Shown piece by piece: positions 36,401-63,547 of a DNA stretch of 64,000 nucleotides. Both the position numbers and the translations under genes were made by a program. Every line of letters starts with the position of its first letter. Within the stretch, counting starts at the first letter, position 1. The DNA is from Pocillopora damicornis (Eukaryota): positions 62,001-126,000 of the forward strand of contig NW_020843846.1 in NCBI RefSeq assembly GCF_003704095.1, in the 5' to 3' direction. Below the pieces are notes generated by a model, which was not told where the DNA came from, ran no database searches, and was given only the letters and a program-made list of their open reading frames with translations.

Positions 36401-39400
36401 TAGATAAGATCGTTTCTCAATTACCATACGACATATCATCATAAATAACCGCTGAAACTTCAGGAAAACTGACAATCGATGTTTGCATTCGAGGAATTTC
36501 CACTGAATTAAATTCTCATAGGGGAGTGGTATTTGTCACACTTATACGAACAAATGTCAGAGAAGTAAGTCGAGTACAGATCACTTTTCGTCATTTCGTT
36601 GGTTTTTTTCTTTGCCTCAATGGTGCTGATTAGAACCATTTCTGGAATAAAATGTTTTAGGTTACATATTGAACTACAAGGAATGGAATACTATCTACCT
36701 GTGTGTTCATTGTAAGTGACGGTAATCATTCCTTTCTACGCTTTAAGTACCAGATCATCCGCCAACAAACGTGACCGCGTTCAATACCAGTTCCACGAGT
36801 ATTAACGTCACCTGGCAGCCCATCCCTCCAGATCATACGCATGGGATTATCCTGACGTATCAAGTTAAATACTGGAGACGTGATAAACCAAATGATAACG
36901 TTTCCAACGTCACAGTAAACAGTACAGAACTACAAGTGGAACTGAAAGGATTGGGAAAGTACAAAGAATATTCAATTCAAGTCGCTGGATCAACGGTGGT
37001 TGGTTTGGGGAATTACTCGGAAGTTGTTTTTGTGCGAACTGAACAAGACGGTATGTAACCCATTTCTCAGTAGGCAACAATTTGTTCATGTGCTTACTCA
37101 TCTTATTAGCTTTTTCTTGAATTGTGGTAATAAATTCCATTATCGAGGAAATAGCTTTTCAATATAAATTTTTCAGTAGACTTTAAGAAGGACAAGTACC
37201 ATAGTGCCATCCCAGAACTTAAACCATCGCTCAAACTCACTTTACGTATAACAATCTAAATTTTTCTCCAAACCAGTTTTTTCTTGTTACCGCAGTCCCA
37301 GATGAGCCGCCAGTCAACATCAGAGCAAAAGGAATAGAACCCACTTTATTAAAAGTCCATTGGTCTCCTGTGCCTTACGAAACCATTAATGGAATTGGCA
37401 TCGGTTACAAGCTCATCCTTATCCACATAAATGGAACCATTCTAAGAAATTTCACATTAAATACCTCAGCCCTCACGATAGACATCACCGGTTTAGAAAT
37501 ATGGACGAATTACACCATAAAGATGACAGCTTTCACTGTCATGGGAGATGGCCCTTGGAGTGATTTTATAAAAGAAGATACAGATGAAGAAGGTAAACCA
37601 GCAGCTCATCATTTAAATCAGGCTTAAATGCGTCACTTAAGCATACCCCCTAAAAATAGCCATATCTCGCTATTTAAGAAATTGAAATGCATGCTTACTA
37701 AGAATTTCCTAACCAAAGTTCTAAGGTATATTCAACAGCAGAGCGTTGGGCTTCATTCTCAATTACACGATATTTCCTAGTGGCGTTTGTGGGTAAAACC
37801 ACGCTTAAAGATACTGTTCAGTCGAGCGAGCAAAAGGAAATAATTCTTAAATCTTTTTTCATAGCTCCATTCAAACCTCCAGCTAATTTGACAGGAGAAG
37901 CAAAAAGTTCGACATCAATCTTTGTTCAGTGGAGTTCACTTGTTCTACCAAATCTCCGGGGTATTCTCCGAGGTTACACGGTTTATTACAAAGAAGCGCC
38001 AAGTTCTGTTCATCCAAGTGTGTTAAAAAACGTGTCAGTTGGCATATCTGTGACTGAAGTTGAGCTAACCGGCTTATACAAATTTACCAAGTATCAAATC
38101 TGGGCAACAGCCTTTACGACCACAGACGGGTTGCCGAGTAACTCTTTATTTGTAACAACACAAGAGGACAGTAAGTTTTTCTTCTTCAAACTGCCTTTTT
38201 TAAGCATGCATTGCTGACAAGTTTCTTCCTTCAAATTCAACTCAAGCACTAACTTGTCGTTGTCTCGTCATCAATAGCTCCGGACCGACCTCCTCTATAC
38301 ATCACATACTTGGCTCCAAGCTCCACCAGTCTCTTTGTTGAATGGGGTGCAATCCCTCCGCAGTTTGAAAATGGCATCATAAGGGGGTTCAAAATTCAAT
38401 TCCATGAGATTCCATTCAATGGCACAGTGGAAGAGAGGGAAGGCCAACCACTTCTCCGCTGGATGATTCTTGATAATTTAAAGAAATTTACTTTCTACTC
38501 TATTCAAGTTCGTGCCTTCACAACTGAGGGATATGGACCTGAAAACAAACTTAAAGCACGGACGGGTCAAGACGGTATGTTTCTTTCGTATGACGTTATT
38601 GATTGTAAAAACTGGGAATCATACAAGATTCTTGATGGCAGGTTATTTTCATATTATGTAAATTATATGGGCTGACTGGGATTTTATACTCAAAATAATT
38701 ATAGCAATTTTGTTTTTCCTTTTGGTCTTTTACTGACAACCGTTAAAAATGCTGCTTTCCAGTCCCCAGTAAACCTCCACAGAGTATAACTACTGAAAGT
38801 CACGTAACATTGACAACAATTCCAGTTGCCTGGAAACCAATCGTTCCAGATCATATCAATGGCATATTGCTTGGTTACAAGATTAGGTACCAGGCCGTTG
38901 AGATTGGCGAGGAGTCAGTTGAAGACAAACCTATCAGGGAGCAGATAGTGAATTCCTCTACTTTGTCTCTGGTGCTGACAAATCTTGAGATTTTTATCTT
39001 GTACCGGATTGATGTTGTGGGATTTACGATCATGGGCGACGGCCCGCCGGCCACGGATTATGCAGGTTTGTCACGTTCTCGACGGAATGGTGATAATATG
39101 TGATAATATCTCTTATTTTAAAAATTACAATTATTTACAGAAACCTGTCGCTGTCATAAGCGGCTCACAACAAGTTGGTACGAATTTCAACCATATGTCC
39201 GATTGTCCGAAAACGGTCTCCCAGACGGACTTATTCCACCTATCCTTAGCGATCTAGCAGTCACGTGCTGCGAAACCTGTCAATCACATGGTAAATCTTA
39301 CGTGGACATGAATTTAAATGGGTTCAATGTGTCAGCAATGTTCCCGAGTCTACGTGCACTACGGAACGGTATAGAAAATCCCACAGACTTTTTCTTTCCG

Positions 39401-42400
39401 GTGTACGGCTTTAAAGACCAGACACATTTTGCCAAACAGTTTGGTTACCAAGGAATAGTTGAATCACCTGGAATGGCGTTCATAGTTAACACAAACTCCC
39501 AGGATAATATGCCCAATGCTGTCCTGGTAAACATAGCGTCCTGTTGGCCAGCGGTGATGTTGGCTTTGGTAATCACGTACTTGGCAGGGCTGGTCGTATG
39601 GTTTGTGGTAAGTCGATCATTCGGTTTCACTGCATAACGACTGAGGATTGCACAATATTGAGAGCTACCAAGACAGTCTGTGAGGTTAATTCCTGGTCAA
39701 AGATCATGATATTTGTCGTCAAAAGATCCGAAGTGCGTCGCAAAATTGGCATTAGCAAGTTATAGCTTGTTCCAATGCAATTTCAATAAGGTACCCAACG
39801 ACAGAACACAAAACCATTGATGATTTGGGTAACTCTTGGTTTCTGAATTTGCACAGTGCAAAGCTTTAATCAGTGTTCCACTGTCTCCATACGTCGCATT
39901 TCTTTCGCCTCGATTAGCTGCACATTTTGGCGGGAATGGACTACTATATATGTCTTTCAATTGCTAAGGAATAAAAATTTGTTGTTGCCTTTTATTGTCA
40001 TTGTTGTTGACAGACTTGATCAACAACGAATAGTTAGAAAGGGAAATACAGAATCACTTTGATTTAACTCATTTTCCTTCCTTTCATGTGTGCAGGAGTC
40101 GGAGACCAATCCCCAAGACTTTCCACCATCGTTTATAGAGGGAGCGTATGAGTCGTTTTACTGGTCATTTGTATCCATGACAACTGTTGGGTGAGTGTCA
40201 ATCAAGTAATCTTTAGACTAAAATCGAGACTTGAGTCAATCCTTAAGGTCAATATCGATCTAGAAATTGAATGAAGTCTCCTTCTAGGTCGTAAGTGGTG
40301 GTGGACCCTTACTCCGTGAGTGTCTCAAGTCATATACTCACTGTAAAGTTTGGGATAGGACATGATCTAAAGGCCTACAAAATTATACCTTCTCTGAAAC
40401 GAGTTTGTAAATCGACATTCACAGATACGGCGATCGAGCACCAATAACCATCATAGGAAGAATCCTGGCTATAGTTGTCATTTTGTCCGGTTTAATAATC
40501 TTTGGAATTGTGAATGGCGCCATGGCAACGGCCATTACAAGTGTTACAATGGAAACAGATTACAAGATCTACGGAACTAAGGTAAAATAGAGATGGAGAA
40601 AACGAGTTTGATTTCGAAATGGCCACGCAGTTGCTCTTTTTACAGTTTCTCGTTTGGGTAACTGGTCTAACTTTCGAAAAACTAGGTCTATGCTGTTGGT
40701 ATCTGTCTGAGATGGAACACACAGAGATGTGCTTATTTTCTTATTTTCTCAGCAAATCAAAAAAACATCGCGCTGTATCATAACTAGGTAATTTCAATTC
40801 AATACCAACCTGATTATTCCATGTAAGAGTAAAGAGAAGTGTACATTGTTCCAACTGCTCCTGGCCTTGTACGATATTACGCTAGTAAGTTAATCCATGC
40901 TTAATATTGCGTCAACTGAGAGCCTTCCCATCCACTGCCTGTTTGGAAAAACGATTTTGCTCAGTAAACTCATTATTACGTCCCTGCCACGAAAGCGCTA
41001 TTTTTTATCCTACTGAGCGGAAAAAGTATATGAGATGGGGAAAATGGAAAATCATAAGAGCAGATCACGTGGTGCAAAGGTAGCGTTTGGGTCCTCGCAA
41101 ATGGAGAGACATGACTCTTCTACTAATGTAAGAGTTTATCCCACAGACTTGTCCCATACTATCATCAGTTATTAAAACATGGGAAAAAAATAGTGTCGTT
41201 TTAAAAATTAAACCAATTGATGTTAGGGCGATCAACTTCTCCCAAAGATTCCAATGATCAGCACCACCGGGAGGGTGTGCATGAGTTTAAGCTGTATTCG
41301 CCCCTTGTTTTTGTCCATGTAGAAGAAATTAGTTTAAATTTCTAAACGCTCATCTGTAAACAGTGACAGTTAGGAACTTCTAAGTATAAAATGTTACAAG
41401 GCTTCCATATTACATTTTACTTTCGCAGGTAGCAGCAATTGAGGGTTCTCCTGAATATCGAATGGGAGTAAGGAAAAATGCTAACATGGACAAAGGTAAC
41501 ACTACCTAAAACAATCGACGATATTTACCGTTGGAAGAAGCAATGGGTGGTAGAATTGGTAGAGCTATCAGCAGCAGTTTATAAAAAGCCTAAAAAGCAC
41601 CGCAAAGAGTATCATTGACAAAGANNNNNNNNNNNNNNNNNNNNNNNNNNNNNNNNNNNNNNNNNNNNNNNNNNNNNNNNNNNNNNNNNNNNNNNNNNNN
41701 NNNNNNNNNNNNNNNNNNNNNNNNNNNNNNNNNNNNNNNNNNNNNNNNNNNNNNNNNNNNNNNNNNNNNNNNNNNNNNNNNNNNNNNNNNNNNNNNNNNN
41801 NNNNNNNNNNNNNNNNNNNNNNNNNNNNNNNNNNNNNNNNNNNNNNNNNNNNNNNNNNNNNNNNNNNNNNNNNNNNNNNNNNNNNNNNNNNNNNNNNNNN
41901 NNNNNNNNNNNNNNNNNNNNNNNNNNNNNNNNNNNNNNNNNNNNNNNNNNNNNNNNNNNNNNNNNNNNNNNNNNNNNNNNNNNNNNNNNNNNNNNNNNNN
42001 NNNNNNNNNNNNNNNNNNNNNNNNNNNNNNNNNNNNNNNNNNNNNNNNNNNNNNNNNNNNNNNNNNNNNNNNNNNNNNNNNNNNNNNNNNNNNNNNNNNN
42101 NNNNNNNNNNNNNNNNNNNNNNNNNNNNNNNNNNNNNNNNNNNNNNNNNNNNNNNNNNNNNNNNNNNATCAGAGCAAGCTCTTATTTTTTCACTCGAAGG
42201 GTGGCCGATGTAGTTTCTGAGCTTGCTTTACTGCGATGACCGGAGATCGCCATGATGAGCGAGCCGCGATGGACTTCAGCATGATCATATTCGCTCTGAC
42301 ACCGTTGTGATTAGTATGAATGTTAACAGTTGTGCCAGTTTGGTTATATTTTTCATCATTTCTNNNNNNNNNNNNNNNNNNNNNNNNNNNNNNNNNNNNN

Positions 42401-44644
42401 NNNNNNNNNNNNNNNNNNNNNNNNNNNNNNNNNNNNNNNNNNNNNNNNNNNNNNNNNNNNNNNACTAAGATTCCATTAAAGAGAATGCTATTCAGTGAAA
42501 TATGAGGTTTATGAGAATCTAGCGCGAGGAATGAAACTATACGACGTATGCACTAGAAATCAATGCATTCAGTTCTCCGCATGAGCAAAGGGGCAAAGTT
42601 TAAAGAAGTGCTGGGCTTTTTTCTCCAGAACGCGAATACCACACGTTCGACGATATCTACGAAGCCCTACATGAACGACACGTTATTGGGGCCTTAATAG
42701 ATACATACAGTGCTGGAAACAACAAGGATTTGTTTGAACAAGAACATCTACGAGTGAATAAGATCCTCGATTACTCGGCTACCTATGGGGTTGTAATGGG
42801 AGTGGAAGCCCGAAAACTCAGACGCTGTTTCAAACGGTACACTGAAAGGGTATTCGCTAGTAAGATTTCACATCATATTCAAAAGAATACAGAACAGCTC
42901 AAGGCGAGTATCAAATAAAAACATTGATATTTGGTAGAATTATATTGTTGTAGAGCAATTTTTTGGATGTCATTTATATCAAAAATTTATTGAATGACTG
43001 ACAGACTAAAAGATTGACTGACTGGCCAACAAACTGAGACCAACTGACCAACCGACAGGCTTGTTAACTGACAGACTGATTGATTGACTGACTGACTGAT
43101 TGACTGACTGACGCCAACTGACCGACTGACTGACTGACTAACCGAAAACCAGAGAGACCAACTGACCAACTAAACCAAACTAATCTGTTATGCCCCCAAC
43201 GACGCAGCACCACAGTTTCTTTAGAGACTTAACCCCTGTATAACTGACTGACGGATTGGTTACGACCGACTGACTGATTGACTGACTGACTGACCGTTTG
43301 AGACAACTGACCAACTGACTGACTGATCGAAAACATGAGAGAACAGTTGACCAACTAAACCAAACTATCTCGTTATACCCCCAACGACGCAGCACAACTA
43401 TTTTCTTAGAGACGTAACCCCTGTAAAACTGACTGACTGATTGGCTGACGACTGACTGACTGGCTGACAAATAGTGGTTTGATTTTTCTCTTTTAGGAGC
43501 CCGCTGAACCGCTCTCCATGGAAAGATCAACCGGGATATTTGACAGTCACAGCACGGTGTTTCAAAAGACTATGTACATAACTATAATATGGTTAACATC
43601 GTTCCTGTTTTGTGGCATTATCTGGGAAATTATTCAACGCTGCAGAACAAGAGCAAAGGTTACATCACATGGTAATTACATGCACCTTCGGATCTTTTGA
43701 ATACTTTAAATTGTTTTTTTAATGCCTAGATATTAACCTTTTTGCTTTACGCCTTTGATAATTTGCTACCCGTTTCCAGCGCCAATAACCATCCTCGGCT
43801 ATCCCGGTTACTCTATCTCTGTCTATCTTTAGCTTTCAGGTAAACTGTGACATCATTCTTATTCTATTTAGATACACAATGTCTCTGACGTTACTGATCC
43901 TTGCAATATGCAGGACGCTTCTCATGTACTAAGCTAATAGTGCCCTACCACACCCAAGAGTCCTCTGTCTCTCAGCGGTGCAGCAGTGGGCCGGGAGATC
44001 CTGAGGACTAAGGGAGTAAGACTCAAATTGTTTTCTATGTGCCTTGCCCATGGAAAAACACAAAACAACTTTACTTTACACTTTCATGTAACTTTACTTT
44101 ACTTTACAACTTTGCTGTAAAATTTGGAAGTTTCACATACTTAGAAATGCCTCGGATATTTTAAAGTGTTCTGTATTTCTTCCTATCCATCTCATTTCTC
44201 CCTGATTTATCTCATCTTATCAAAATTGTTCGAAAATGTAATAGAGGGAAGATTTTCGCGTTGGCTACCATTTTCTGTACGTGTTCTCCCTATTTTGTTT
44301 TAGATTCACGACAAGAGCTAAGGACCGAGTTGAAAGGAATGGTCGAAAGTTTTAATGAAAACATTCGAACAATTAAAAAAGAACTGGCATCACGACATAG
44401 AAGAGAAAGAAAAGAACTCCTGACAAGTATAGAGAAGCAGCGAGGCAGGAAATATCTTTCGTCAGTTGAAGTTTCAGAGCTGGACAACCCTTACTTTGAA
44501 CCAGAACCGGACGAACAGGTATCACCCAAGGATAAATTTGATGAGTTGGTGTTTTCCAACGATACACCAGACAAAGCGGAACATTGCTGCGATGAACGTA
44601 ACGAGGAGCATTTGCCAAGCAATAAATATCAAACCAATTGCTGA
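193..44644 (+). CDS. Giant multidomain receptor-like protein with C-terminal iGluR/GluR0-like channel carrying a K+ filter (54 exons in window, 5' end upstream of window)
   Basis: Manual splicing gives 54 exons with AG acceptors and GT donors (one GC). Phases are compatible, the total of 13,875 nt is divisible by 3, and it ends at TGA 44642-44644. Domain motifs are recognisable throughout; the exons are listed individually below. Confidence 0.8.
610..938 (+). CDS. exon 2: F5/8 type C N-terminal half
   Basis: CQEALGMENG...ITASS...ARL...WLQIDL...VATQG...WVIKYKL. Confidence 0.92.
1674..1812 (+). CDS. exon 3: F5/8 type C C-terminal half
   Basis: EFDANTDKNTVVFHELYPGITARYIRFYP...SMRVELYGC. Confidence 0.9.
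2890..3043 (+). CDS. exon 4: CUB domain 1 N-half
   Basis: IKSPRYPKDYPGNMDCVYEI...TFQDFHLE; phase-2 donor gtaagt. Confidence 0.9.
3116..3282 (+). CDS. exon 5: CUB domain 1 C-half
   Basis: CSTDYLKI...GTFCG...VAFHSDYALQRKGFRIYF. Confidence 0.9.
3480..3636 (+). CDS. exon 6: CUB domain 2 N-half
   Basis: LRSPGYPSNYTGRHDCVYKI...ISFIDFSLEFHNSC. Confidence 0.9.
4321..4493 (+). CDS. exon 7: CUB domain 2 C-half
   Basis: YDYLTI...GKFCG...ITFHTDYVVESRGFDINF. Confidence 0.9.
5162..5794 (+). CDS. exon 8: fibrinogen C-terminal (FReD) domain
   Basis: [37 protein letters not shown]...EFWLGND...GAWWYKECHQSNLNG. Confidence 0.95.
6149..6377 (+). CDS. exon 9: pentraxin-like domain N-half
   Basis: LIFSGESSDYVLL...DLQDATACWWMKT...TVFS. 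Confidence 0.85.
6689..7044 (+). CDS. exon 10: pentraxin-like domain C-half
   Basis: DGLWHHMCIA...GKWTFYSDG...FRGNMSRFNMWD...C...GNVVPW. Confidence 0.88.
7649..7830. repeat. Palindromic dispersed repeat (same family)
   Basis: gtaaattggccgccgtaaa...tttacggtggccaatttac inverted arms; gaagggctaacgctcgaaacgtcagc. Confidence 0.7.
7916..8152 (+). CDS. exon 11: LamG/ConA-like domain N-half (continues in exon 20)
   Basis: VAHWDF...SECLGNPSLCHQGLSLGFWLR; cag acceptor, gtaagt donor. Confidence 0.8.
8421..8657. mobile_element. MITE with terminal inverted repeats and 3-bp CAG target duplication (PIF/Harbinger-like)
   Basis: Left end ggccgggttgttcaaag, right end cttcgaacaactgggcc; internal inverted accagggtta/taaccctggg; cag on both flanks. 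Confidence 0.7.
9133..9360 (+). CDS. exon 12: TLDc domain 1 N-half
   Basis: WLRCFKASPNWKGTHFHSCDGLGPTVTFIRVQKNIFGGF. Confidence 0.85.
9781..10101 (+). CDS. exon 13: TLDc domain 1 C-half
   Basis: AFIFSLKN...FGPIFGENDI...LLAGSKYFIVDDLEAFY. Confidence 0.88.
10734..11038 (+). CDS. exon 14: F5/8 type C N-half
   Basis: QLSASSS...SWCS...EWLELDLG...GVAVQG. Confidence 0.88.
11145..11259 (+). CDS. exon 15: F5/8 type C C-half
   Basis: NYFYPNSYTARYVRFTVIHAKTASCMRVGV. Confidence 0.8.
11686..12054 (+). CDS. exon 16: C-type lectin domain 1
   Basis: CLPNWKYFRGSCY...SWEAAKTTC...LVNI...ENDFI...WIGL...EPA...C...WYTVSC...FICE. Confidence 0.92.
12765..13042 (+). CDS. exon 17: F5/8 type C N-half
   Basis: ARL...SWC...WLQIDLG...GINTQG...FVKKFTLAY. 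Confidence 0.88.
13532..13673 (+). CDS. exon 18: F5/8 type C C-half
   Basis: EFVGNVNGNGVVKQTFLPPFKAHFVRF...CMRVEIY. Confidence 0.88.
14085..14444 (+). CDS. exon 19: C-type lectin domain 2
   Basis: CPSGWEYFQGSCY...C...LPKVTSIEENNFL...WSDGS..FTNW...CV...WNTVLC...IACK. Confidence 0.92.
14589..14780. mobile_element. TTAA-flanked non-autonomous element (piggyBac-like MITE), copy 1
   Basis: TTAA-CCCT...AGGG-TTAA; internal ctccttac/gtaaggag inverted pair; homologous copy at 59638-59849. Confidence 0.65.
15170..15574 (+). CDS. exon 20: LamG/ConA-like domain C-half
   Basis: WVHVGITWSNQWGLRFYQNG...FYIG...ISDLRIWE; tandem acceptor gagcag (15167 is an alternative start). Confidence 0.85.
15957..16150. 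repeat. Palindromic dispersed repeat (same family)
   Basis: ttggccaccgcaaagagtttcaaag...gctcgaaacgtcagctttgaaactc...ggccaa...ccgacgcagcaccacagtttcttta. Confidence 0.7.
17156..17272 (+). CDS. exon 21: probable MAM domain N-terminal segment
   Basis: WYMWKNTGNYDYPWEL...PQDT; polypyrimidine-tag acceptor, gtaagt donor, 117 nt, phase 1-1. Confidence 0.65.
17942..18232 (+). CDS. exon 22: WSC-like domain
   Basis: YHNMGCFK...KCLHAARRKGNKMFAVASGGKC...C.NGKGATNYMNIY. Confidence 0.78.
19011..19424 (+). CDS. exon 23: F-type lectin (FTP/fucolectin-like) domain
   Basis: NAAFKKPTAQS...ATDG...CTKT...PWWRVDL...IRVG...C...GRFVSI...LKLCEVEV. Confidence 0.9.
20062..20318 (+). CDS. exon 24: MAM domain core
   Basis: GYVQAS...CLSFHYSMSG...LNI...W...GDQGNQWKFAQV. 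Confidence 0.88.
20927..21047 (+). CDS. exon 25: MAM domain C-terminus
   Basis: IKFEALSDGGIGGKIGIRNIKA...C.C.P..AC. Confidence 0.8.
21530..21760 (+). CDS. exon 26: TLDc domain 2 N-half
   Basis: WVPCYRAHVNGWQKLVFHQMCDNRGPSVTIARIDSFVFGGFSDKSW. Confidence 0.9.
22174..22485 (+). CDS. exon 27: TLDc domain 2 C-half
   Basis: SSNAFLFSL...GPCWG...YFTGQTSFQADDLQVF. Confidence 0.88.
23123..23233 (+). CDS. exon 28: short EGF-like Cys module
   Basis: CDPPCWEGESCDEIAGKCICDPTRREEEMC (6 Cys); phase 1-1. Confidence 0.75.
23416..23537. repeat. 61-bp tandem duplication
   Basis: taacgtaagatttgcttttatc...ctctgacacctacttg.attatgcaatggaaa twice. Confidence 0.9.
23897..24130 (+). CDS. exon 29: unassigned 4-Cys module
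   Basis: Open 234-nt phase 1-1 exon: NCKERW...CSGRLFARYD...WRCYYEDAL...SNCYH. Confidence 0.7.
24800..25119 (+). CDS. exon 30: F5/8 type C N-half
   Basis: CRPLGMESGSILDSQITGSS...NARL...AW...QWLQIDF...VATQGR...WVKSY. Confidence 0.93.
25510..25631. mobile_element. Hairpin (foldback) MITE
   Basis: Near-perfect arms of about 50 bp: ggatcaatatcagtatctg...cctacccctcccctaac / gttaggggaggggtagg...cagatactgatattgatcc. Partial relatives near 60360-60425, 61912-61955 and 63945-63985. Confidence 0.75.
25903..26041 (+). CDS. exon 31: F5/8 type C C-half
   Basis: IFNANWDENTVVYNTINPVIFARYIRVMPKTWKSHISMRVEFYDC. Confidence 0.92.
26773..27468 (+). CDS. exon 32: intact LamG/ConA-like domain
   Basis: YVWTFD...GVRGRA...VTVALWL...WTHWVFTW...VYRNG...FTIG...FDDIIVW. 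Confidence 0.88.
27790..27908 (+). CDS. exon 33: SEA-like domain N-part
   Basis: VNVSLELTDEEFNLEYRNITSEIFKHTSTWIESQ; gtaagg donor, phase 0. Confidence 0.78.
28421..28476 (+). CDS. exon 34: SEA-like domain middle
   Basis: Strong acceptor tttctcgcag; VMSLHQNNSLLSVDNFVF(W); phase 0-2 bridges exons 33 and 35. Confidence 0.7.
28660..28802 (-). mobile_element. Dispersed repeat fragment with minimal hammerhead-like core (Penelope-like-element-associated type)
   Basis: Minus strand reads CTGACGA-A-GGGC-TAAC-GCTC-GAAA-CGTC-AG; same family as 7649-7830, 15957-16150, 28085-28150 and 32166-32310. Confidence 0.55.
29700..29848 (+). CDS. exon 35: SEA-like domain C-part
   Basis: NVTNVAANFTIRFKG...LGNRPI; gtaagt donor. 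Confidence 0.75.
30349..30420. repeat. (AAT)n microsatellite
   Basis: Directly visible. Confidence 0.95.
30571..30861 (+). CDS. exon 36: FN3 repeat 1
   Basis: SSTSLAVSW...NLKPYTLYAITV...G.G..S...RT.E. Confidence 0.92.
31186..31450. repeat. Diverged local direct duplication (about 75-bp unit)
   Basis: gaaatcc.actccac...aaaga.accaaatt.ggagaatcttct...atgat.tggg at about 31186 and about 31370. Confidence 0.7.
31468..31767 (+). CDS. exon 37: FN3 repeat 2
   Basis: PTSPPLNV...VSWEP...GIILGYKI...AFNSVGEGPPS. Confidence 0.93.
32166..32310. repeat. Palindromic dispersed repeat (same family, degenerate)
   Basis: gtaaattggtcaccgtaaagag...ctttgcggtggccatttta. Confidence 0.65.
32321..32428 (-). repeat. 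Probable SINE-like repeat fragment
   Basis: Resembles, from memory only, the 3' part of an abundant coral repeat (ttttcaggcc...ctgcgaggatcac...ccgcagttcaaatatatgac); single copy in this window. Confidence 0.35.
32540..32824 (+). CDS. exon 38: FN3 repeat 3
   Basis: PSLAPP...TSVTVKW...NGII.G...GLEK..Y.IKVASFT. Confidence 0.92.
33416..33753 (+). CDS. exon 39: F5/8 type C N-half (within the FN3 array)
   Basis: CNAIGMED..ITESQITASS...NARL...GAWCA...WLQIDF...VAIQG. Confidence 0.92.
34317..34458 (+). CDS. exon 40: F5/8 type C C-half
   Basis: IFQGNWDSNTVVFNSITPVIYTRYIRILPKSWEGNPCIRAEFFTC. Confidence 0.9.
35023..35319 (+). CDS. exon 41: FN3 repeat 4
   Basis: SSTGVGLQWKPP...LKPYTPYEFKV...KTQED. Confidence 0.9.
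35866..36201 (+). CDS. exon 42: FN3 repeat 5, with furin-type site RRRKR|S
   Basis: PSEPPRNF...INGVLRGYKV...NRRRKRS...NLESYSTYTVTVLAFT. Confidence 0.9.
36748..37050 (+). CDS. exon 43: FN3 repeat 6
   Basis: PDHPPTNVTAFNTSSTSINVTW...GLGKYKEYSIQV. Confidence 0.93.
37296..37592 (+). CDS. exon 44: FN3 repeat 7
   Basis: PDEPPVNI...LKVHW...GLEIWTNYTIKMTAFTVMGDGPWS. Confidence 0.93.
37865..38170 (+). CDS. exon 45: FN3 repeat 8
   Basis: PFKPPANL...SSTSIFVQW...GLYKFTKYQI. Confidence 0.93.
38278..38574 (+). CDS. exon 46: FN3 repeat 9
   Basis: PDRPP...SSTSLFVEW...NLKKFTFYSIQVRAFT. Confidence 0.93.
38763..39065 (+). CDS. exon 47: FN3 repeat 10
   Basis: PSKPPQSI...IPVAW...INGILLGYKIRY...GFTIMGDGP. Confidence 0.92.
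39141..39607 (+). CDS. exon 48: periplasmic-binding-protein-like S1 lobe plus first transmembrane helix (M1)
   Basis: WYEFQPYV...DGLIPPILSDLA...DFFFPV...SPGMAFIV, then hydrophobic WPAVMLALVITYLAGLVVWFV; gtaagt donor. Confidence 0.85.
40096..40190 (+). CDS. exon 49: pore helix and first half of K+ selectivity filter
   Basis: ESETNPQDFPPSFIEGAYESFYWSFVSMTTVG; phase-2 donor gtgagt. Confidence 0.92.
40425..40581 (+). CDS. exon 50: YGD filter end plus inner transmembrane helix
   Basis: (G)YGDRAPITIIGRILAIVVILSGLIIFGIVNGAMATAITSV...KIYGTK. Confidence 0.92.
41429..41495 (+). CDS. exon 51: start of S2 lobe
   Basis: VAAIEGSPEYRMGVRKNANMDK; tttcgcag acceptor, gtaaca donor. Confidence 0.85.
41625..42167. 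other. Assembly gap (N run)
   Basis: Ns. Confidence 1.
42364..42463. other. Assembly gap (100 N)
   Basis: Ns. Confidence 1.
42629..42903 (+). CDS. exon 52: S2 lobe (GC donor)
   Basis: YHTFDDIYEALHERHVIGALIDTYSA...YGVVM...LRRCF...; ends AAG|GCGAGT. Confidence 0.82.
42993..43468. repeat. (GACT)n-rich tandem array with a duplicated unit of about 185 bp
   Basis: gactgact runs; cccccaacgacgcagcac...tagagac.taacccctgta twice. Confidence 0.9.
43497..43671 (+). CDS. exon 53: final (M4-like) transmembrane helix
   Basis: STGIFD...MYITIIWLTSFLFCGIIWEII followed by basic QRCRTRAK. Confidence 0.82.
44304..44644 (+). CDS. exon 54: cytoplasmic tail (coiled-coil-like then acidic), terminal exon
   Basis: ELRTELKGMVESFNENIRTIKKELASRHRRERKELL...DNPYFEPE...NC*. 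Confidence 0.82.
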
Positions 44645-47600
44645 TTTACTCAACTCTTTGACTCCCAGAGTGGAGTAATCTTGCGAAACAAGTTTTATTT
44701 TTCTGGACAAGCCGGTTTTTTAATGCTTTATCTTGAGTGATACACGCGAGACTTGGCCATCAAACTAAAAAAATAACTTTGGGGGTTTAAGGTTGGAGAA
44801 ATAAATTTAGAATCAAGCTCAGGATGCCTGCCCATTTCAGTGACGACTCCCGAGCCTTTCTCTTAAGAGCTGTATCATATTGCTATCCTTTAAAGCAGAT
44901 CTTTAATCGGCCAGCAAGGAAGCTGGAAAATAGAGCAAGTATGCATTCTCGTCTTTGCACTTTCGGCAAAACAACCCTTACAAATAAAATGCCCGGGTTT
45001 GAACTGCAAAAAATTAAAAATAATTAATTCATTTGCCTCGGAAATGGAAGTGACTTGCAGGTATTTTACTCGTAATTTTATATTTATTTATGAGCCCTCA
45101 GTTGATACAGGATGGAAATAATTTTCTTCTTCGCTGTCACTCAACCTCGCTAACATAACATCAATACTACTGAGAATGCTCTGTTTACCTCTAAATTCTC
45201 ATTGAACTGACTTAAATATAACCACAAGATAATTCTGTTATTGGAAAAATGAATCACTGGGTAGCAGTTTTCTTTTGTCATTATTTTCTTGCTTGGTCTA
45301 CAAATCACACAAACAAAAACAAAAGGTTCAAAAGAAGGAATGGGCTACGTCAGGAACAAGAATAAACAGCGACAGTCGAAATGCATGCATTGGGCTTTCA
45401 AGACTGGTATGACAGTGGCACAAGTGAAAATTTCGCTGACACAACTTGACTGATGGTCAAAACGAGGCAAAACATGTCTCCTCAGCAAACGCCCAGGGTT
45501 GCATGACAAGCTAAAAACAAAGCAATGAAAAGAAAAAACAAAACAATCCCGTAAATCCTTCACAGAGCACATTATACAACTGCATTATGTAAAGCCGTTG
45601 AAAATCTCGTTGTCACAAAATTTTCTAACCAGCCGCTTAAGTACTTTATCCTTAGGAAATCCCCACACGGAAACTTTCGTGTTGGGGAACGTCTTTCGTG
45701 AAAGGCATCATACAAAATAAAGGAAAATCATATTAAGAGTTGCTAAATTCGACACCTTAAAATTGGGTTGTTGATTGTTTTAAATTAATAGTTTGCGTGA
45801 TGTAGCTTCCATTAGGTACGAAAGATATGCCCTTTTGCAAAAGCATTTTAATAACTTTATTCCAAAGAGCACAATGCATAACACAACGCAAACTATGTTA
45901 CCATGTTTACCGGCTTTTTGGAACATTTGAATTTGGCTGAGTGCCACAAATAAGGCGCTTTTAAGCGTTTTTTTTTTCAATTGAAGGGAAATTCACATTC
46001 GAAAAAAACTTCAAAATGGGTTTGTCAAATAATACTTCAATCTTCAAGTAAGAAAGGGATTAAAAAAGCAAGTGGGTGGCAAGCTGGCTAAATGGATGTC
46101 AACCGTGACAAATAGTCCATTTGCAGGTTCTTAGAAATAAAAATTCGAAAAAACAAAAACTTAATTGTATGGTCGGCTGAGATATTTTACTCCTAGGCTT
46201 ACTTAGCACAAGTACGAAATATCCAAGCCAACGGATTCATTTGCTTTCAAAAACGGGTCTACTTGACCTCTTGCAGACCTCGCATATTGATAAGGTTTAT
46301 TGAAGACTTCAGTTAGGCAGCGACATAAAACATTTAAGAAAGTCACGATATACGAGTTTTCAGAACTAAGACATTGGAAAATCTAAATTGTAAAAATATC
46401 ATTAAGGCAAGATACATAGATTAGATAAGACAGTATCCGTTGAGAAGAAAAAGGTGTTAACAAAAGAAAAAATAAACGTGAGTCCATGGAGGATTGCAAG
46501 CTGAGCCATTACAATTTCGCTGTCGGATGCTTTTTGGAATTGTTCGTGAAACATGATAGAAACTGTGATAACACGTTAGGAAACAACAGAGAAGTAACCG
46601 CTTTTGAAGGTTAAAAAACCTTGCAGCATTTAGGCAAAACACCTGCGGAGCATGATACCATCGCGAGGCGTGTTATGCAACCTATCAATATCGTAACATC
46701 AATATGAACAGGGCGGACTGCAAAAAGACCTAATATCTTAATGAAACAATGGCTTTGGAAACTGTGAAATCCTTACAGATGTCGGAAAAGGGACAATGGA
46801 AATGTCACTTTGGACGCGTATTTTGTATAAATTGCACAACCAATTAGAACGAGAACGAACCAATTACTTCGTAAGCTGTCAGTTAGAAATGGTTAATTCT
46901 CAACACATCTTGGAACAATGCGACACCAACCAAAAAAAAAATAGAAAAACAGCAGGACATAGCGACGAAAAGAGATTAAAAGAATTTTATCTTTTAATAA
47001 CGTGAAGCAGTCTAAACCATGGAAATTTTATACTAGATATGGTGAATTTTTTGCGTATCTCAAAACCATGCAAAGCCAGTAGCTTTCACGATATCCTACA
47101 AGAGTATGAAAACAGAAGAGTATAACGTTACTGGGAGGTTATTAGACTATATATCATTTGCATATAACTCTTGGGATTCTGTGCTACAGTTATTTCGTCC
47201 TATGGAAAACAGCAGTGCTTGTCACATTTAGTAAGAAGTAACTAATTCCTAGTTAGATTTCGTCAAAAAATTGTTGTGATGGATCCTGCTAAATTTCCAA
47301 AACAAATTCTCTGGGTCGTTGAAGAAATAAGTTTTAAAGAGCAAACGTTTCTCCCATAATAGGCGTATGTTTGCTTTACATGTTTTGCATGTAGTAATAT
47401 TCTCGTTTTCCAGTGATGAATTCATGTCCGTTTTCTCACTTTTAATTTGCCGGCTGAGGGTTAAACTTCGGGCTCGGAAAACATCAAAGACGCTTCTTGT
47501 TAAGTCCCAAAGCTTTTTAACGCACAAAATCCTCAGCTACGTGAAAGCCAAGACTTTAAATATAATATATAAGCCCTGGGCTATAAATTCGCCAGATGTA

Positions 47601-50769: not shown

Positions 50770-53700
50770 GTGAGTGACTAAATAATGTACCATTCTGTTA
50801 TTGTTTAGCAGTACGCTATATTGTCATTCAGCCAAAAGCCAGCGTTGCAGCTACAATTTAACGACAACTTAGAAATGCATTAAATTTAGTCCGGTCGCAT
50901 CAGTTTTATAACTGGTGCTTATTGCCTGACCGATTATTAGTAATAACACTTGGTATTTCCTGCGTGTCCTTAGATAGTAACTTTGTCCTCGGTGGTGCGC
51001 AAGAAAAGAACAACTACCCTATAGTGTATTGCAGTGATGGCTTCTGTGAACTCACGGGCTTTTCGCGAAGCGAACTCATGAGGCGAAGTTGTGGTTGTAA
51101 TTTTTTATACGGCTTGGAGACAAACCAGGACGACATAACGAGCATACAAAAAGCCTTTAAGGCGCAAGTGGAACTGAAGAAGGAGATTATGTTCTACAAA
51201 AAGAACGGTGAGCGTATTTTTCTTACTTTTATTATCGGTTCATAATAATCTTATGTCAACTATTCTGGCAGCATTCGACGTAACACTGAGGCGTTGTTAG
51301 ACTAAAGCACTTAGTTTAATGAAAAAAGAATCGCGCGGTAATATTTGTGGACAATGCTCGGCGACACTATTTTACTCACTGACGAGTTAAACTTTCACTT
51401 TCTTTCATTTATCTTCTTGGACGGGCTCACGCAGAAAACGTATTTTTCTTCTGACTCTTTCTATCGGAAGTTGCAATTAAGTCTGGGCATTCAATGGCTA
51501 TAATACCTTCAAACAACAAAAAACAACTTAGAAAAAATTTACATAAGGAGTTATAAGCACATTATTCGAACTGACGATTTCATCGCTAAAAACTCTAGCT
51601 GGCGAGATAAAGCTTAATCTGTTACAGGCATGTTTGAAGGCAAATCTCTCTGTCGTCCTCCGAGGACCGTTCAGTTCCATAAAACGCACGAAACATGTGG
51701 TCAAACGACAAACACAGTTCTAAAATTCTTCCTTCAACTGAGCACCAAACACAAGGTCATTAACATAAAAAATAAACCTAACCTTCTGTTTTGAATTTCG
51801 CTGACCAGAGGAATATTCTTAGTAAAATTAAACATATGCAACAAAGGATCATCCCCAATTCACCGTAAATTCATAAATTTCCTATAAAAGATTATAATTC
51901 TTGGCAAGAAAAAAACCTTTACCAAGTAACTATAATGATTGTCCAAGAAAAATCTGAAAATGATGTAATATATCGGTTTACAATTTACATGTATGGAAAT
52001 GTTCCTGTGTTCATTTTTATTTCGCTTCTTTACAGATTTCCAATTATCGATTAGCAAAAACCCACAGAAAGGTCATAAATTTCAGATCATTTCCTCTGTC
52101 GAACAATACACTTTAGCGAAACTATGATGAACATATTCAAAGCATTTTTGAGAACGGCTGTAACACAATGGCGTTTAATACGTCAAGGGAAATAACTCGC
52201 ATTTCTTGTAACTCTACCGAAATCAAAACACCTTTACCATTGACTCAATTGTGATAACAATTTCGTTCAACACATGTTCCTTGCTTCGGTCGAAAATTAA
52301 AGCACTAAAAAAAATAACTCAATTTTCTGAGATGACGCGTCAACGAACAGCTAAAAGCCTCGAGTTTTATTTCGACGGAAAAAAACATTAATTCAAGTGA
52401 AATCCAAAACATGATTTGTCAACTCAAGGTCAGAGGCAGACTTTGCAAAACAATTGCACAGCAGTCTCTGAGTATCAGCCTAACAGCGCAGCACATTTTC
52501 CCGCAACACGTTGATTTGTTCAAACGGAATACAAAACCCTTGAGATCGAGCTGAAGCGAACTCAATTCAGCGCTCACGGAAAAGTCACGAACAGATATCA
52601 GCTAGATTTCATTTTTGTACGGGCACGCCAAAATTTCTTTATCTTTTCACCATGTGTTCTTCTAAAAAAAGTGACAATTTTCAACACGGATAACGATTCT
52701 GCACTGATCTTAGAAGCGCGACCCGTAACGTATCATATCATAACATGTCCAGAGACATGACGGGCTGTTTGGTTTCTGAAGTCCTGTGTCAATATCGCAC
52801 GAACAAAAGGGATCTGATGGTTATTCACCACTTCAACCAACAACCTTTGGTTAGAAATCGACGGATGATGTTAGACCCTAACGTAACTCCCCGCGAAGAC
52901 GTCGAGATAACCCGTTGTAACGAAATACGAGATTTATTTCCGAGGCAATACCAGCAAGTTTGACGTAAAGAGATACAAGCCACCACTTAAACCGAAGGCT
53001 TCCTTTTTAATTTTCAATCGATCAATGACGATAGATGTTACTCACGAGCGGGAAATAAGTTCTTCGTCAGATATCGTAAAGTGAAACTGTCAAGGGGGCG
53101 ATACGATGCTTATTTCCCGGACGATGTCGAACATCTGAGAGAAAACACCGAGTAAAGATGCGAACAAAGTTCAGGCTTCGCAAACAAGTAAATTGAACCA
53201 AATTTGTGTGCGTTTCTTCCTAATGAAGAACGAATATATTTTGGACAACATTACGCACGTCGAGAAAAAAATTCAGACTGGCTCACCTACAACGAAAATG
53301 TTTGTAAAACGTTTAGCGCGTTGATGTCTAAAAGAAAACTGTTTTTTTTTGTTTCTTTTTCCATATAATTTTTTCCATAACAATCTGTTCGTGCATGTTA
53401 CGCTTTTCGTTGCCAACACGAGATGTGCAAGTAAATGTGGATTTGACATTAAGTCCATTCGTTCAAATCAGTAATGATTCCCTCAGACTACTTTTGTATT
53501 TTAGGGGAATTTGTTTTCTAATTGTTTATCAAGGGTTGGTCTTTGGTTCGGCCTGGTTAGTTACACTAAGGAACCGACAACGCATTTATTGCTTTATGAA
53601 TACCGAGAGCACTCCATGTAAAAAAAAAACCTCAGGAATAATCAGATATCCAATACATTACCCAAAAGGAAATATTGAACGGATACCAGAACCAAAAAAA

Positions 53701-56700
53701 TTTGACAATAAGCTGAATTGTACAAATTGTACACGCTAAGTTTTAAATAAAAAGTATTTTGAGTTTAATTTTCCTTGACGAAAGTCGCTGGTAAATCCAT
53801 TTTGTTTCGTTGCATTATGTAGACTGATTGTTACATTGTAGTATCTAAGTTTGCTAATCAAACGGGAAATACATCACTTATGGTGAAGATTTAATTGTAT
53901 CTGCTGACCGCGAACGAGAGATCCATGAGTGATGTAGATGTAAAAAAGGTCGCTTGTTAGCAAGGAAACCTAAAGCAAACAACGAAATGATTTTGCTGCG
54001 TTTAGTCAACAGATCTAGCAAAGAAACGCCCTCCACAAGCTTAGGTTTTACAACAGGCATATCAAAAATGACACTTCGTCATTAACAAGAAACGCCAGCG
54101 ATCGCAAAAATAGTCTCGACGTCACTAAACCTATTCGGTTCTTTTTAATTCTTCCTGAAAAAATTTTAATTAATTTGAATTGTTTTCCCTACAGCCTTTA
54201 TGCTTATTTCAATAACACGATAGAGCTGGCGTTTAAGTGCGAATTGCAATAAAAAAGGGACAGCCACTTTACCTAAAATATACACACACTTCCGCGAAAA
54301 ATAAAGAGAAGGCAAATCTTTTGAAAACTGCGAATGGGCTGTACGAGAAACTTATTTCGGAGACTCATTTCATACTGACATTTTGTGCAAATAACTGAAC
54401 AAAGCGCGGTTTCCCAAACGCAATTGTTAGCTTGTAAGGTATTTCAACATCCGTCTGTAAAAAAAGAATTTACAGGTTTTCTTGAATTTATTTTCATGTC
54501 ACGAATATTCTCAACGTAAAAAAAAAAAGGCCTTCTTGATTTTTTTGGCCGAGAAGCGCAATATTTCAGCGAAAATTATCACTTTGTGAATAGGAAATCG
54601 CTACGCTTAGTATGAGTCTTATACAAACAATTGAAGAGCTGAAATAAATCTGACTCCTTTGTCTTCTCCCCACCGATGTAATTACTGCTATGATTCCGTT
54701 TCAACGAACGACATCATATAAGCCGCTTACATTATATTGCGACCACTTAAAACTCTCTGTTAAAAGCCGTTAATAATGAAAAATAGCTGTATCATTACAC
54801 AACGTGCTTTGCACTCAGTCGTCAGCCACAACACAACAACGCAGAGCTCTGTTTTATCATTCGCATTATTATTATTTCTGTAATGGTAATTTATTCGAGT
54901 ATTCCGTTTCGCCTTTTTCATTAGTGCGCGGAAGCAATTCGTTCTAGTATCGGAAACGCGTCGGCTAAAAGCGAGTACATTCTCCAATTTGCACCAGACG
55001 ACAGTTGTCGCGCTTTGCGGTGAGAACATTTCAAACTGTAATTGCAAAAAATACGTGCGGTGGTTATATTTTTCTTTTGGTGTTAATACCCGTGTTTGTC
55101 CAGACTCAAGTAATTTACAGCGCCATGCAAAGAGAAGGAAAGATTTCTGTTGTGATAATGAAAATGAAATGGGTATAGCTTCTTACGACCCTGTGGGGGA
55201 AGCAATTAAAAGTAAGCGATTACTCTGGCATTTTCCCAGAGATAAGTCTTTTTACTATTCACTGAAGAGTAAACTTTCGTAAACGAAGCCGAAGTAAGGG
55301 GATTTTCATGATTAAAAGTGAACATTTTCCAATTCGTCCTCTATTCGAGTGATAGCTCCAGCGAAAGAAAGGTAGAAGACCGTGTATATGAAAGACCCCA
55401 TAATCAAATTATTCTTCTGATTCAAAGCGGATGTATGAAAACACTTCTTTTAGCAGAAATTTCCTTTTTCCTTTTTCCTACTGAGGAGAAAGATATCATC
55501 TACATTTTGAATTTTTGGACTTTTCACGAATCAGGAAGGTATGAAACTTGTGACTTTATCCTGGAACTGAGCGTAACACCGCCTACAAGACTAAAAAAAA
55601 AATTGAAAAACTTTGTTATGTGCGGTGAGCGGAAGAAACTGTTGTAAAAGAAGCCGAAGTAAAGGGATTTTCATGTTTCAAAGTGAATATTTTCCAATTT
55701 CTCCTCTATTTACAGTGATAACTCGAAAGATAAAAGACCGTTTCTACGAAAGACCCCAAAATTAAATCATTCTTCTGATTCAGAGCGAAATTTAGTAGAA
55801 ATTTCCTTTTTGCTTCCTTACAAATGATGGCTTCCAAAACACGAATATGAAATAAAAGGAAAAACCAATTTGAACGATGACAAAGCAAATATTCCATATC
55901 TTTTACGAATCGAAAGTATTTAGCATATTCTTTTCGCAAAATTAGAGGTAGCTTTTGTTTCCAAGCTTCATCCTAATGATAGCTAGCAAGCACAACAAAA
56001 CATGAGGTGCCAATTCCTTTTAGCAGCTCCGTCCGTAGTAACAGAATGATACCGAAATTAGTTAAAACTAATCTGGCTGACAATCGCAATACTTCTAAAC
56101 CAAGGCATGAGCCTATAAATAAGTATCATTTGACAGATTTCTATTTGTTTTTAATTCAGAAAAACCGTAGAGTACATCACAAATTTATAAACCGTTAGGG
56201 GGGTAGTAACTAAGAGGAAAAGCAAAGCAAATTGGAACAAATAAAAACAAAGAACATCTCCAGAAAAAGCGATGTTCCAGATAAGAAGTTGAATTAAGTA
56301 GTTACTTTTTAAAATATCAGAATTTTCAGCACTTTCTCTCCGCTCTCGTAATTTAAAACTTGTCCCTGGCATTTTGTAAACAAATTCACAATGCATTAAA
56401 AAAAAAAGGAAGAAATCAAAATAGCCTTAGGGAACAAATGTCGGAGCCATTTTTGGGCAGCTTGCATATGTATAACGTTAAAGATTCATAAAGCCTGAAC
56501 GTTTTTTTCCCGTTGTTTCTCTGTAACATCCCACTCATTTATGTCGCCGGTAAGTTATTTGCAAGATAACGTCAAAAGATATTTAAATTAACTTTTGTGA
56601 TAAAGTACTGGTTGCTTGGCACATTCAGTGTAAACTGACGACAACTACTCTCTTTAATTGTCAGTTCTGATGCGACGATACGCAGCAACGTGGGAGCTTT

Positions 56701-62700: not shown

Positions 62701-62705
62701 CTTGG
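50694..62705 (+). CDS. KCNH8: Elk-type (Kv12; KCNH3/4/8-like) voltage-gated K+ channel, 5' part; gene continues beyond the window
   Basis: Five phase-compatible exons: 50694-50769, 50974-51207, 60124-60255, 61142-61290, 62316-62705. They show the PAS cap [21 protein letters not shown] motif [14 protein letters not shown], Elk-type [31 protein letters not shown] and helices S1-S3. The symbol means nearest vertebrate-like member; a co-ortholog of KCNH3/4/8 is expected. Confidence 0.9.
50974..51207 (+). CDS. Elk/KCNH exon 2 (PAS domain)
   Basis: SNFVLGGAQ...[22 protein letters not shown]...FLYG...FYKKN. Confidence 0.93.
55285..55812. repeat. Diverged direct repeat (two copies of about 170 bp)
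   Basis: gaagccgaagtaa.gggattttcatg...aagtgaa.attttccaatt...gaaagaccc...ttcttctgattca at about 55285 and about 55650. Confidence 0.8.
59638..59849. mobile_element. TTAA-flanked non-autonomous element, copy 2
   Basis: Shares ctccttactgtctg...tcaactaataatcc...acttgtc...gtaaggagaaatt...aagggttaa with 14589-14780. Confidence 0.6.
60124..60255 (+). CDS. Elk/KCNH exon 3 (PAC)
   Basis: [32 protein letters not shown]. Confidence 0.92.
61142..61290 (+). CDS. Elk/KCNH exon 4 (N-linker)
   Basis: [14 protein letters not shown] resembles the Elk RRSRAVLYHLS-type linker; good splice sites. Confidence 0.82.
62003..62250. repeat. 17-bp minisatellite (actatgctatgcatcat)n
   Basis: About 13-14 units directly upstream of the Elk exon 5 acceptor. 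Confidence 0.95.
62316..62705 (+). CDS. Elk/KCNH exon 5 (S1-S3)
   Basis: LPQYK...[26 protein letters not shown]...FRTSFV...[21 protein letters not shown]. Confidence 0.95.
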
Positions 62706-63547
62706 GTAAGTAAAGCATTTATGTCGTTTGATAACGATCGATATCAAGTGCGGTGGAGGTAATTCCTACCACGCTCAGATACCAACAATCAAGGTTACAA
62801 CCCATAGCATGACGCGTATATGATATTACAGAAAGCAACAAAAAGAGTTCAGGACTCAGGCATCGAAACTGATAGAGTTTGGGATTTATTCACAACAAAC
62901 CCTCTTGTAAACAGAAATTATTTGAACTAGAGGGTTTCTAATTTTGTCGTCTTTCCTAGCCAACTGTTGTTGCGGTCTCGCACGCAACGCGCTATTGAAG
63001 CGCAATTTTCTATTGAAGTAATAACTTATTATTAACCTCTCCCCGAAAAAAAAAGGAAATTGCTTCCAGTTTAAGTAGCTGTTGGTGAAGGAGAGATCAC
63101 GTTGCGTGAACGATACGGCGCGCGCGTGATGATAGCAAACAACAGCTACAGGTATCACATTAAGTGCTTTTAAACAGAGTCCACTGAGGTGCGGCTTTCA
63201 GCAAAGGTCGAACAATGCCATATACTAACCATGCAAAACTAACTTTAACCGCTGTTCCGTGTAAATGCAACTTGCTTACAACTTGGCTTGAAATAGCTAT
63301 TTCTAACTTAACTTTCCAGATCTAGAATCATGCTAACAAAGCTTTAAAATCATTACAATTGCATTTAACTAACTTATAATACTAGAAACATAACAACGGA
63401 AATTGTAATCGGGCTGAATAAAGTTTTATTTTAAATTCCAAGAAATTTTGCTACTGGTCATCATCGCTATTATCCACTAATGGTCCGCTCTAATGAATTA
63501 GTACGTCGTATCATTGTTATATGCTTTTCTCTCTTTTCGTTATCTAG

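Follow-up and report, generated by a model that had tools for sequence, protein, structure and literature searches.

Textbooks derive glutamate receptors from a binding protein that became fused to an inverted K+ channel. According to two reviews (2023, 2025), the natural proteins of the ionotropic glutamate receptor (iGluR) type that carry a K+ signature are GluR0 and the rotifer AvGluR1 only (PMC11479355, PMC12332018). The latter, described in 2011, is amino-acid-gated and has the full modular architecture of a eukaryotic iGluR, including the amino-terminal domain (PMC11479355, PMC12332018). Here we analyse a locus of the coral Pocillopora damicornis that lies in a stretch of 64,000 nucleotides of contig NW_020843846.1 (assembly GCF_003704095.1, positions 62,001 to 126,000), referred to below as the window and numbered from its first nucleotide. 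A sequence-only reading of the window had proposed an animal gene encoding a 'GluR0/AvGluR1-like' channel, with an intact K+ selectivity filter divided by an intron. The gene is indeed a spliced animal gene; it does not encode a stand-alone channel, however. The channel forms the C-terminal module of a type I membrane protein whose lectin/adhesion ectodomain is very large. It belongs to a family whose sequences are public but unnamed, a part of the iGluR/GluR0 superfamily with an M4-bearing K+ pore and with adhesion ectodomains replacing the amino-terminal domain.

The module is encoded on the + strand by seven exons, A to G, which are all open and phase-compatible when the window is read from 38800 to 45000 and the exons are translated; none of them contains an internal stop codon. 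Exon A (39141-39607, 155 aa) encodes the S1 lobe and the first membrane helix, M1 (39545-39607). The lobe contains one NVS sequon and the motifs CxC (39146-39154), CCxxC (39266-39280), DFFFPVYG (39386-39409) and VESPG (39458-39472). Exon B (40096-40190) supplies the M1-pore linker NPQDFPPSF, the pore helix (40144-40179) and the T-T-V-G half of the filter (40180-40190 plus base 40425). Its last two bases begin a split Gly codon, which base 40425 completes at the start of exon C (40425-40581). There follow the Y-G-D half of the filter (40426-40434), the inner helix M3, which is equivalent to M2 of GluR0 (40450-40545), and the linker to S2. The S2 lobe starts in exon D (41429-41495) with VAAIEGSPEYRMG, which aligns with the family motif S-x-E-x-R-x-G, and its bulk is in exon E (42629-42903), where GALIDTY (42688-42708) and YGVV (42784-42795) are found. 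Exon F (43497-43671) encodes a pre-M4 segment, the M4 helix (43572-43634), terminating in the W-E motif of the family, and the basic stop-transfer run RCRTRAK (43638-43658). Exon G (44304-44644) encodes a cytoplasmic helical tail (44315-44440) and an acidic C-terminus, ending at the stop codon (44642-44644). Upstream of exon A is the exon of the last fn3 domain of the ectodomain (38759-39065; Pfam fn3 E-value 4.4e-08), whose end at 39065 is in phase 1 and matches the two leading bases of exon A. The introns are GT..AG with the sole exception of E/F (42903/43497), a GC..AG intron with the donor GCGAGT, whose junction is present in RNA runs X1, X2 and X5.

RNA evidence was taken as assembled contigs from four runs of three studies (X1/X2, X5 and X10), placed on 38750-44700; such contigs document that sequences and joints are present but say nothing of expression levels. 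All junctions of the model are found in them (39065/39141, 39607/40096, 40190/40425, 40581/41429, 41495/42629, 42903/43497 and 43671/44304). The joint between the fn3 exon and exon A occurs in all four runs, and the joint that reunites the two halves of the filter occurs in X1, X2 and X10. Translation and RNA contigs therefore agree that TTVG/YGD is divided by the intron, as had been read from the genomic letters. One contig of 1,989 nt (X2 record 12) runs from the fn3 exon through to beyond the stop codon, spanning 38762-44700, and contigs extend past exon G to 44700 in the 3′ untranslated region. Two N gaps (41625-42167 and 42364-42463) lie within the D-E intron. Since X2 record 12 has exactly 67 letters between exons C and E, which is the length of exon D, both gaps are inside one intron and no exon is concealed in that transcript; the uncertainty is restricted to the length of the intron. 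In poly(A) coral/marine metatranscriptome RNA runs the word share of 39000-40700 is 0.46-0.56, approximately the exonic fraction of that stretch. Each of the four runs also has paralog contigs that overlap the core of the pore (loose ends 40162/40192). The readable sequence that separates the two gaps (42168-42363) is a dispersed repeat, of which the assembly has 290 or more candidate copies that are 91-95% identical; its RNA contig depth is 100-190x. The repeat accounts for the high RNA depth there and is probably also the reason for the gaps.

The pore was recognised by the Pfam family Ion_trans_2, whose profile positions 26-39 fall on exon B and 41-78 on exon C (exon C: E-value 3e-06, 27.5 bits vs a cut-off of 22.5), with one position missing at the split codon. 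These positions adjoin, and exons B and C are thus contiguous in the K+ channel profile across the intron, which is better than a chance match. The pore sequence of the window is SFYWSFVSMTTVGYGD, and the TxVGYG signature is present as T-T-V-G/Y-G-D, in agreement with the intact K+ signature first noted. Moreover, the filter residues M, T, T, G, Y, G and D are invariant in an alignment of 20 family members. A profile built from the family only was compared with the PDB and matched the K+ channel pores of Lmo2059, KvAP, Kv4, Shaker, KCNQ and KcsA (E-values 5e-15 to 4e-10). By family membership, then, the predicted pore is a bona fide K+ channel pore, and from its sequence we regard K+ selectivity of the module as quite likely.

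The fold of the flanking lobes was tested on a Nematostella relative, P0016 (LOC125561016, 673 aa), while the exons of the window were searched one by one. The AlphaFold model of P0016, made from a 30-sequence alignment, has a mean pLDDT (predicted local distance difference test) of 82, with averages >90 in most 10-residue blocks of the two lobes. Foldseek placed full-length AMPA (GluA2), kainate (GluK2), delta (GluD) and NMDA (GluN) receptors at the top of the PDB matches, with E-values of 5e-12 to ~1e-10, a probability of 1.00 and 440-540 columns that cover the ligand-binding and transmembrane domains. On re-alignment with VIA-align the best structure was 1II5, the ligand-binding core of GluR0 with glutamate (Z 20.1, root-mean-square deviation 2.6 Å, 209/221 residues). 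This superposition uses the model range 181-527, taking in S1 and S2 and leaving out the membrane part; bacterial amino-acid binding proteins (Z ~18) and iGluRs (Z 16-17) were the runners-up. Rows of the same alignment extend to residues 592-597 of P0016, M4 included, and a long helix (551-640) continues from M4, whose counterpart starts at 551. Two exons of the window match the family profile in hhalign, exon E with a probability of 98.9 (E-value 3.9e-17) and exon F with 96.9 (E-value 1.8e-10), and the clamshell result for P0016 therefore extends to the window locus by homology. The S1 and S2 flanks are, on this model, a periplasmic binding protein type II clamshell, which is what the sequence-only reading had supposed. 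The order S1-M1-P-M3-S2-M4 that it assigned is likewise borne out by the Ion_trans_2 matches to exons B and C, by the M4 helix of exon F and by the span of the Foldseek matches. Single S1 and S2 exons of the window have no Pfam match, and exon A alone against a bacterial GluR0-type profile is not significant in hhalign (probability 3.5). Given these null results for exon A, the link between S1 and binding proteins rests on the family profile and on structure.

By sequence, the closest relatives outside the family are bacterial GluR0-type proteins. When the module-only member P0130 was used as the query, the next matches after the family were bacterial proteins of ~350-370 aa with SBP_bac_3, Lig_chan(-Glu_bd) and Ion_trans_2 (E-values 1e-17 to 5e-08). 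Moreover, comparison by hhalign of the family-only profile with a profile of 15 bacterial GluR0-type proteins gave a probability of 100 and an E-value of 1e-40 over 306 colinear columns, from the first S1 strand to the end of S2; this result is at the level of the family profile. The membrane part common to family and bacteria reads NP-x-EFP...G-x-W-E-G-x-WW-x-x-VT-M-TTVGYGD-[RK]-x-P...FTA-x-x-T-S-S-LT. A mixed profile matched GLR3.4 and GluN1 in the PDB across M1 to M4, and also 2PYY and GlnPQ; since it contains five bacterial rows, we give these matches little weight. When P0016 (by phmmer) and the family-only profile were searched against PDB sequences, the best 60 matches were all FN3 proteins or K+ channels, and neither an iGluR nor a binding protein was among them. 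A quick maximum-likelihood tree, in which bacterial rows and one algal row were the only outgroups and the window was represented by the exon A fragment, joined the animal sequences in one clade apart from those rows, with an SH-aLRT (Shimodaira-Hasegawa-like approximate likelihood ratio test) support of 100 and a branch length of 1.52. Within it, the Lingula and Owenia sequences form a pair (support 98), and exon A of the window falls among FN3-bearing long forms beside P0013, P0015 and P0016 (support 91).

The channel gene had been noted singly; it is a real locus, and one of dozens of paralogs rather than a singleton. Searching 1.84 billion representatives with exon A returned 362 proteins at E<=0.001, mostly single-exon fragments, with ~20 full-length models. 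Besides P0016, the full-length relatives include LOC5501224 (P0013, 4,084 aa), LOC116616082 (P0015, 3,152 aa) and LOC5501882 (P0083, 720 aa) of Nematostella, 'contactin-3-like' of Stylophora, 'sidekick-1' and 'PTPRQ' of Nematostella and a 4,218-aa Hydra protein. Relatives are either uncharacterised or named after their ectodomains. In the full-length relatives Ion_trans_2 (44-53 bits) lies behind a variable set of CUB, Ig, FN3, TSP1, SEA, LamG/pentraxin, F5/8C, MAM, fibrinogen-C and TLDc domains, in combinations that across the family include CUB-Ig, TSP1-SEA-FN3 and LamG-F5/8C-MAM-FN3; Pfam found neither SBP_bac_3 nor ANF_receptor in them. Short members of 450-570 aa, which start with signal peptides, have almost no ectodomain and keep the full clamshell. 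The P0130 search placed such short members in Porites, Actinostola, Nematostella, Desmophyllum and Oculina, with one in the brachiopod Lingula, and a search with the Lingula protein added the annelid Owenia as well as Actinia, Hydra, Hydractinia and Clytia. The ESM Atlas contains several clusters of 76-181 members, mostly cnidarian, under the automatic names 'uncharacterized protein', 'Potassium channel domain-containing protein' and 'Fibronectin type-III domain-containing protein', and their nearest structural neighbours outside Cnidaria are bacterial GluR0-type clusters.

In the coral's own 234-Mb assembly exon A matches 39 places, equivalent to at least 39 paralogous loci. A recognisable Y/F-G-D-x-x-P exon was present at 10/12 loci examined, and at 7 of those 10 a pore-helix exon that closes with M-[TS]-T-[VL]-G can be recognised too. 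Six of these seven pore-helix exons end at the same split position as in the window gene, while at the seventh (L003) the frame runs through Y. The family is constrained and expressed. The nearest paralog (G000:C481:23774-24238, - strand) is on the same contig ~38 kb before the start of the window, in the opposite orientation; it is 79% identical over exon A and has the same split filter, MTTVG / YGDRSP.

In the GluR0 type, the alpha-carboxylate of the amino acid is contacted by an S1 Thr/Arg pair and the alpha-amino group by an acidic residue of S2. In bacterial GluR0-type proteins S1 contains a conserved T-x-T-x-x-R-E-x-x-x-DFS, and both MAFFT and hhalign align its Thr/Arg stretch to a variable segment of the family that follows F-P-V-x-G. 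In the window the segment opposite T-x-T-x-x-R-E is G-F-K-D-Q-T-H-F (FKDQTHF). Across the family alignments made with MAFFT and hhalign there is no conserved Arg in the S1 alpha-carboxylate stretch, and an acidic residue is common 2-4 positions after the Gly. The S1 cysteines, CxC and CCxxC, are specific to the family. In S2 the Ser of S-x-E-x-R-x-G and the Y-G turn are retained, as is the Asp of G-x-L-I-D-x-Y, which at least 90% of members share. The alignment thus suggests a loss of alpha-carboxylate binding. As the S1 Arg is not conserved, the ligand is probably not a standard alpha-amino acid, and the label 'glutamate receptor' is not warranted.

Since the extracellular domains run into S1, S1 and S2 have to be on the same side to form a cleft, and the basic RCRTRAK run comes after M4, the pore loop is expected to enter from the cytoplasm, like that of GluR0 and of iGluRs. 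In the mechanism that we propose, the ectodomain would lead into a clamshell of S1 and S2 that is interrupted by M1, the re-entrant pore loop and M3 and succeeded by M4 and the cytoplasmic helical tail, and four subunits would build one pore. An extracellular event or ligand, probably no alpha-amino acid, would close the clamshell cleft. Closure would pull the S1-M1 and M3-S2 linkers and so open the inner-helix gate, and K+ efflux would hyperpolarise the cell. We infer tetramer formation from homology to K+ channels and iGluRs, and clamshell gating and the direction of the effect are likewise proposed. Taken as a whole, we believe, with some reserve, that the module is probably an extracellularly gated, K+-selective, hyperpolarising receptor channel. 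Its architecture we hold to be nearly certain. Gating by a small ligand is a much closer call, which in our judgement falls just short of an even chance.

Several observations weigh against this interpretation. The fold comes from a relative that is 38% identical over exon A, and not from the window's own joined protein, and exon A alone has no SBP or Lig_chan profile match in Pfam. Lig_chan (PF00060) scores 20.5-32.3 bits on full-length relatives vs a cut-off of 30.8, which only P0145 exceeds, and has no match on the window's single exons. As the S1 Thr/Arg pair is not conserved, ligand gating may be altered or lost. In the pore helix the window has YW vs the family consensus WW. M3 lacks the iGluR gate motif SYTANLAAF, exon C reading ...FGIVNGAMATAITSV; the family M3 consensus IFTAxxTSSL is like the bacterial GluR0-type FTATITSxLT. 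A GYG signature by itself is no guarantee of K+ selectivity. Lastly, the RNA contigs come from metatranscriptomes and match the window mostly at 95-99% identity, so that some of them may stem from another strain or a sister species.

If the clamshell no longer binds small ligands and serves only as a mechanical transducer, the channel would be gated by its ectodomain, opening when the lectin/adhesion array engages glycans, matrix, a cell or microbes, or when tension is put on the array. The absence of a conserved S1 Arg is compatible with this, as is the position of the module directly after FN3 without a LIVBP-type domain. Moreover, the module is paired with many different ectodomains across the family, which suggests that the ectodomain supplies specificity. 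However, many of the 450-570 aa members keep the clamshell in full with nearly no ectodomain, the S2 positions equivalent to ligand contacts (the Asp of G-x-L-I-D-x-Y, the Ser of S-x-E-x-R and Y-G) are conserved, and the modelled clamshell superposes on glutamate-bound GluR0 at 2.6 Å. We therefore consider gating by the ectodomain improbable, albeit worth keeping in mind. A second alternative retains the shape of a receptor channel without the K+ selectivity, making the protein a cation channel of weak selectivity or else an adhesion/organiser protein that for the most part does not conduct, a role long proposed for delta receptors. Such an organiser would fit the huge adhesion ectodomain, HCN-type GYG pores are only weakly K+ selective, and the YW of the window's pore helix could be read in the same way. 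Yet M-T-T-x-G-Y-G-D, invariant in the 20 aligned members, is closely similar in the bacterial relatives, the family consensus FWWAFVTMTTVGYGD is nearly the Shaker pore sequence, and the top profile matches are selective K+ channels. Conservation of the filter is hard to account for without permeation, which argues against a weak or non-conducting pore, and we judge this alternative distinctly unlikely. An artefact (mis-assembly over the N gaps, a gene-model chimera of adhesion and channel genes, or a pseudogene) is scarcely credible, for the two assembly gaps within the span and the non-canonical GC donor of the E/F intron are set against RNA contigs from three studies that connect all exons in frame over the gaps, and FN3 to the module, against RefSeq models of Nematostella and Hydra with the same ectodomain-plus-module architecture and against the lack of a stop codon within any exon, and on the RNA evidence the mis-assembly and pseudogene readings are rejected.

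Upstream exons on the + strand (193-38700) encode F5/8C, CUB, fibrinogen-C, pentraxin/LamG, C-type lectin and FN3 domains, and their continuity with the channel module is shown for the last ~0.9 kb of mRNA only. No LIVBP-type amino-terminal domain (ANF_receptor) precedes S1, the exon upstream being fn3, and none was found in the relatives P0013, P0016, P0083, P0145, P0078, P0022 and P0047. The domain set of Nematostella P0013 resembles that of the window; it is without CUB and Lectin_C matches and has MAM, TLDc and SEA in addition. Downstream, at ~50860-62760 on the + strand, the next gene resembles an EAG/ERG-type voltage-gated K+ channel, as judged from translations of open reading frames (ORFs) only. 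The ORFs concerned are a PAS-like one (50862-51242), a second (60081-60347) and an S1-like one (62280-62759). Within the introns of the channel module, RNA joints on the minus strand between 39579-39963 and 40810-40940 (39963/40810 and 40217/40810) have CT..AC ends, which points to a spliced antisense transcript. The intronic segment 43128-43326, within a GACTG-type microsatellite (units near 43183-43237 and 43364-43420), has a contig depth of 2,000-10,000x in the four RNA runs. It matches no Rfam family, nor does any of 39000-44700, and it may belong to an abundant RNA or to a repeat shared with one.

We found no description of this family in the literature, which was mostly the openly accessible literature, so this is an absence of evidence only; to that extent the family is not already characterised. 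Surveys of metazoan iGluRs from 2018, 2025 and 2026, which cover cnidarians and Lingula, do not mention it. In animals with simple nervous systems, a K+ conductance that is fast and gated from outside the cell would amount to a direct inhibitory receptor, and the fusion to lectin/adhesion arrays hints at surface recognition coupled to membrane potential in corals. The presence of a GluR0 pore, a clamshell and a eukaryotic M4 in one living family makes it possible to test in which order M4 was gained, the K+ filter lost and the amino-terminal domain acquired. K+-based silencing tools have so far been engineered from GluR0 pores, and the family may offer natural scaffolds for them. More speculatively, these proteins may constitute an old animal lineage of four-pass, GluR0-derived K+ receptors, present in Cnidaria and at least brachiopods and annelids, with dozens of genes in corals, interchangeable adhesion/lectin arrays in place of the usual amino-terminal domain and a clamshell that has ceased to bind alpha-amino acids. 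They would then be unrecognised inhibitory surface receptors, converting the binding of a non-amino-acid ligand, or contact with matrix, cells or microbes, straight into K+ efflux. They would also be a living intermediate on the path to iGluRs, one that shows M4 to have been gained before the K+ filter was lost. We regard this larger scenario as possible and at present rather doubtful.

The module can be set beside four known systems. Tetrameric K+ channels (KcsA, KvAP, Shaker/Kv, KCNQ) are like the family in the sequence of the pore helix, filter and inner helix, with E-values down to 5e-15. They differ in that the pore of the family is predicted to have the opposite orientation in the membrane and to lie between the two halves of a binding-protein fold that is extracellular, and in that the coral module has neither a voltage sensor nor a cytoplasmic gating ring. 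Canonical metazoan iGluRs (AMPA, kainate, delta, NMDA, epsilon, lambda) and plant GLRs have in common with it the fold of ligand-binding domain, transmembrane domain and M4. However, iGluRs have a Q/R/N-site loop where the family has a K+ filter, and the family is without SYTANLAAF and without the amino-terminal domain; its Lig_chan scores are mostly at or under the cut-off, with P0145 above it.

The sequence-only reading had placed the channel next to both GluR0 and AvGluR1, and only the first of these comparisons stands. AvGluR1, compared by description, is also an animal protein of iGluR topology that has four segments in the membrane and a pore loop carrying a K+ signature. The coral module differs from it in having an FN3/CUB/Ig/lectin ectodomain instead of an ANF_receptor/LIVBP domain, and in missing the S1 Arg. 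The likeness to GluR0 is apparent in the match between profiles and in 1II5 as the top structure, although M4 is present. GluR0 (Synechocystis slr1257) and bacterial GluR0-type proteins (SBP_bac_3, Lig_chan and Ion_trans_2 in ~350-400 aa) have the same S1-M1-P-M2-S2 order as the family, together with the inverted K+ pore TxVGYGD, the pre-pore motif NP-x-EFP and the inner helix FTA..T.SLT. The bacterial rows stop after S2, whereas the animal family proceeds through a pre-M4 segment to M4 (G-x-x-W-E) and then to a long cytoplasmic helix. Its S1 is Cys-rich (CxC, CCxxC) and without the conserved Thr/Arg pair of the bacterial proteins, and it is encoded by an intron-rich animal gene, often fused to a large adhesion/lectin ectodomain.

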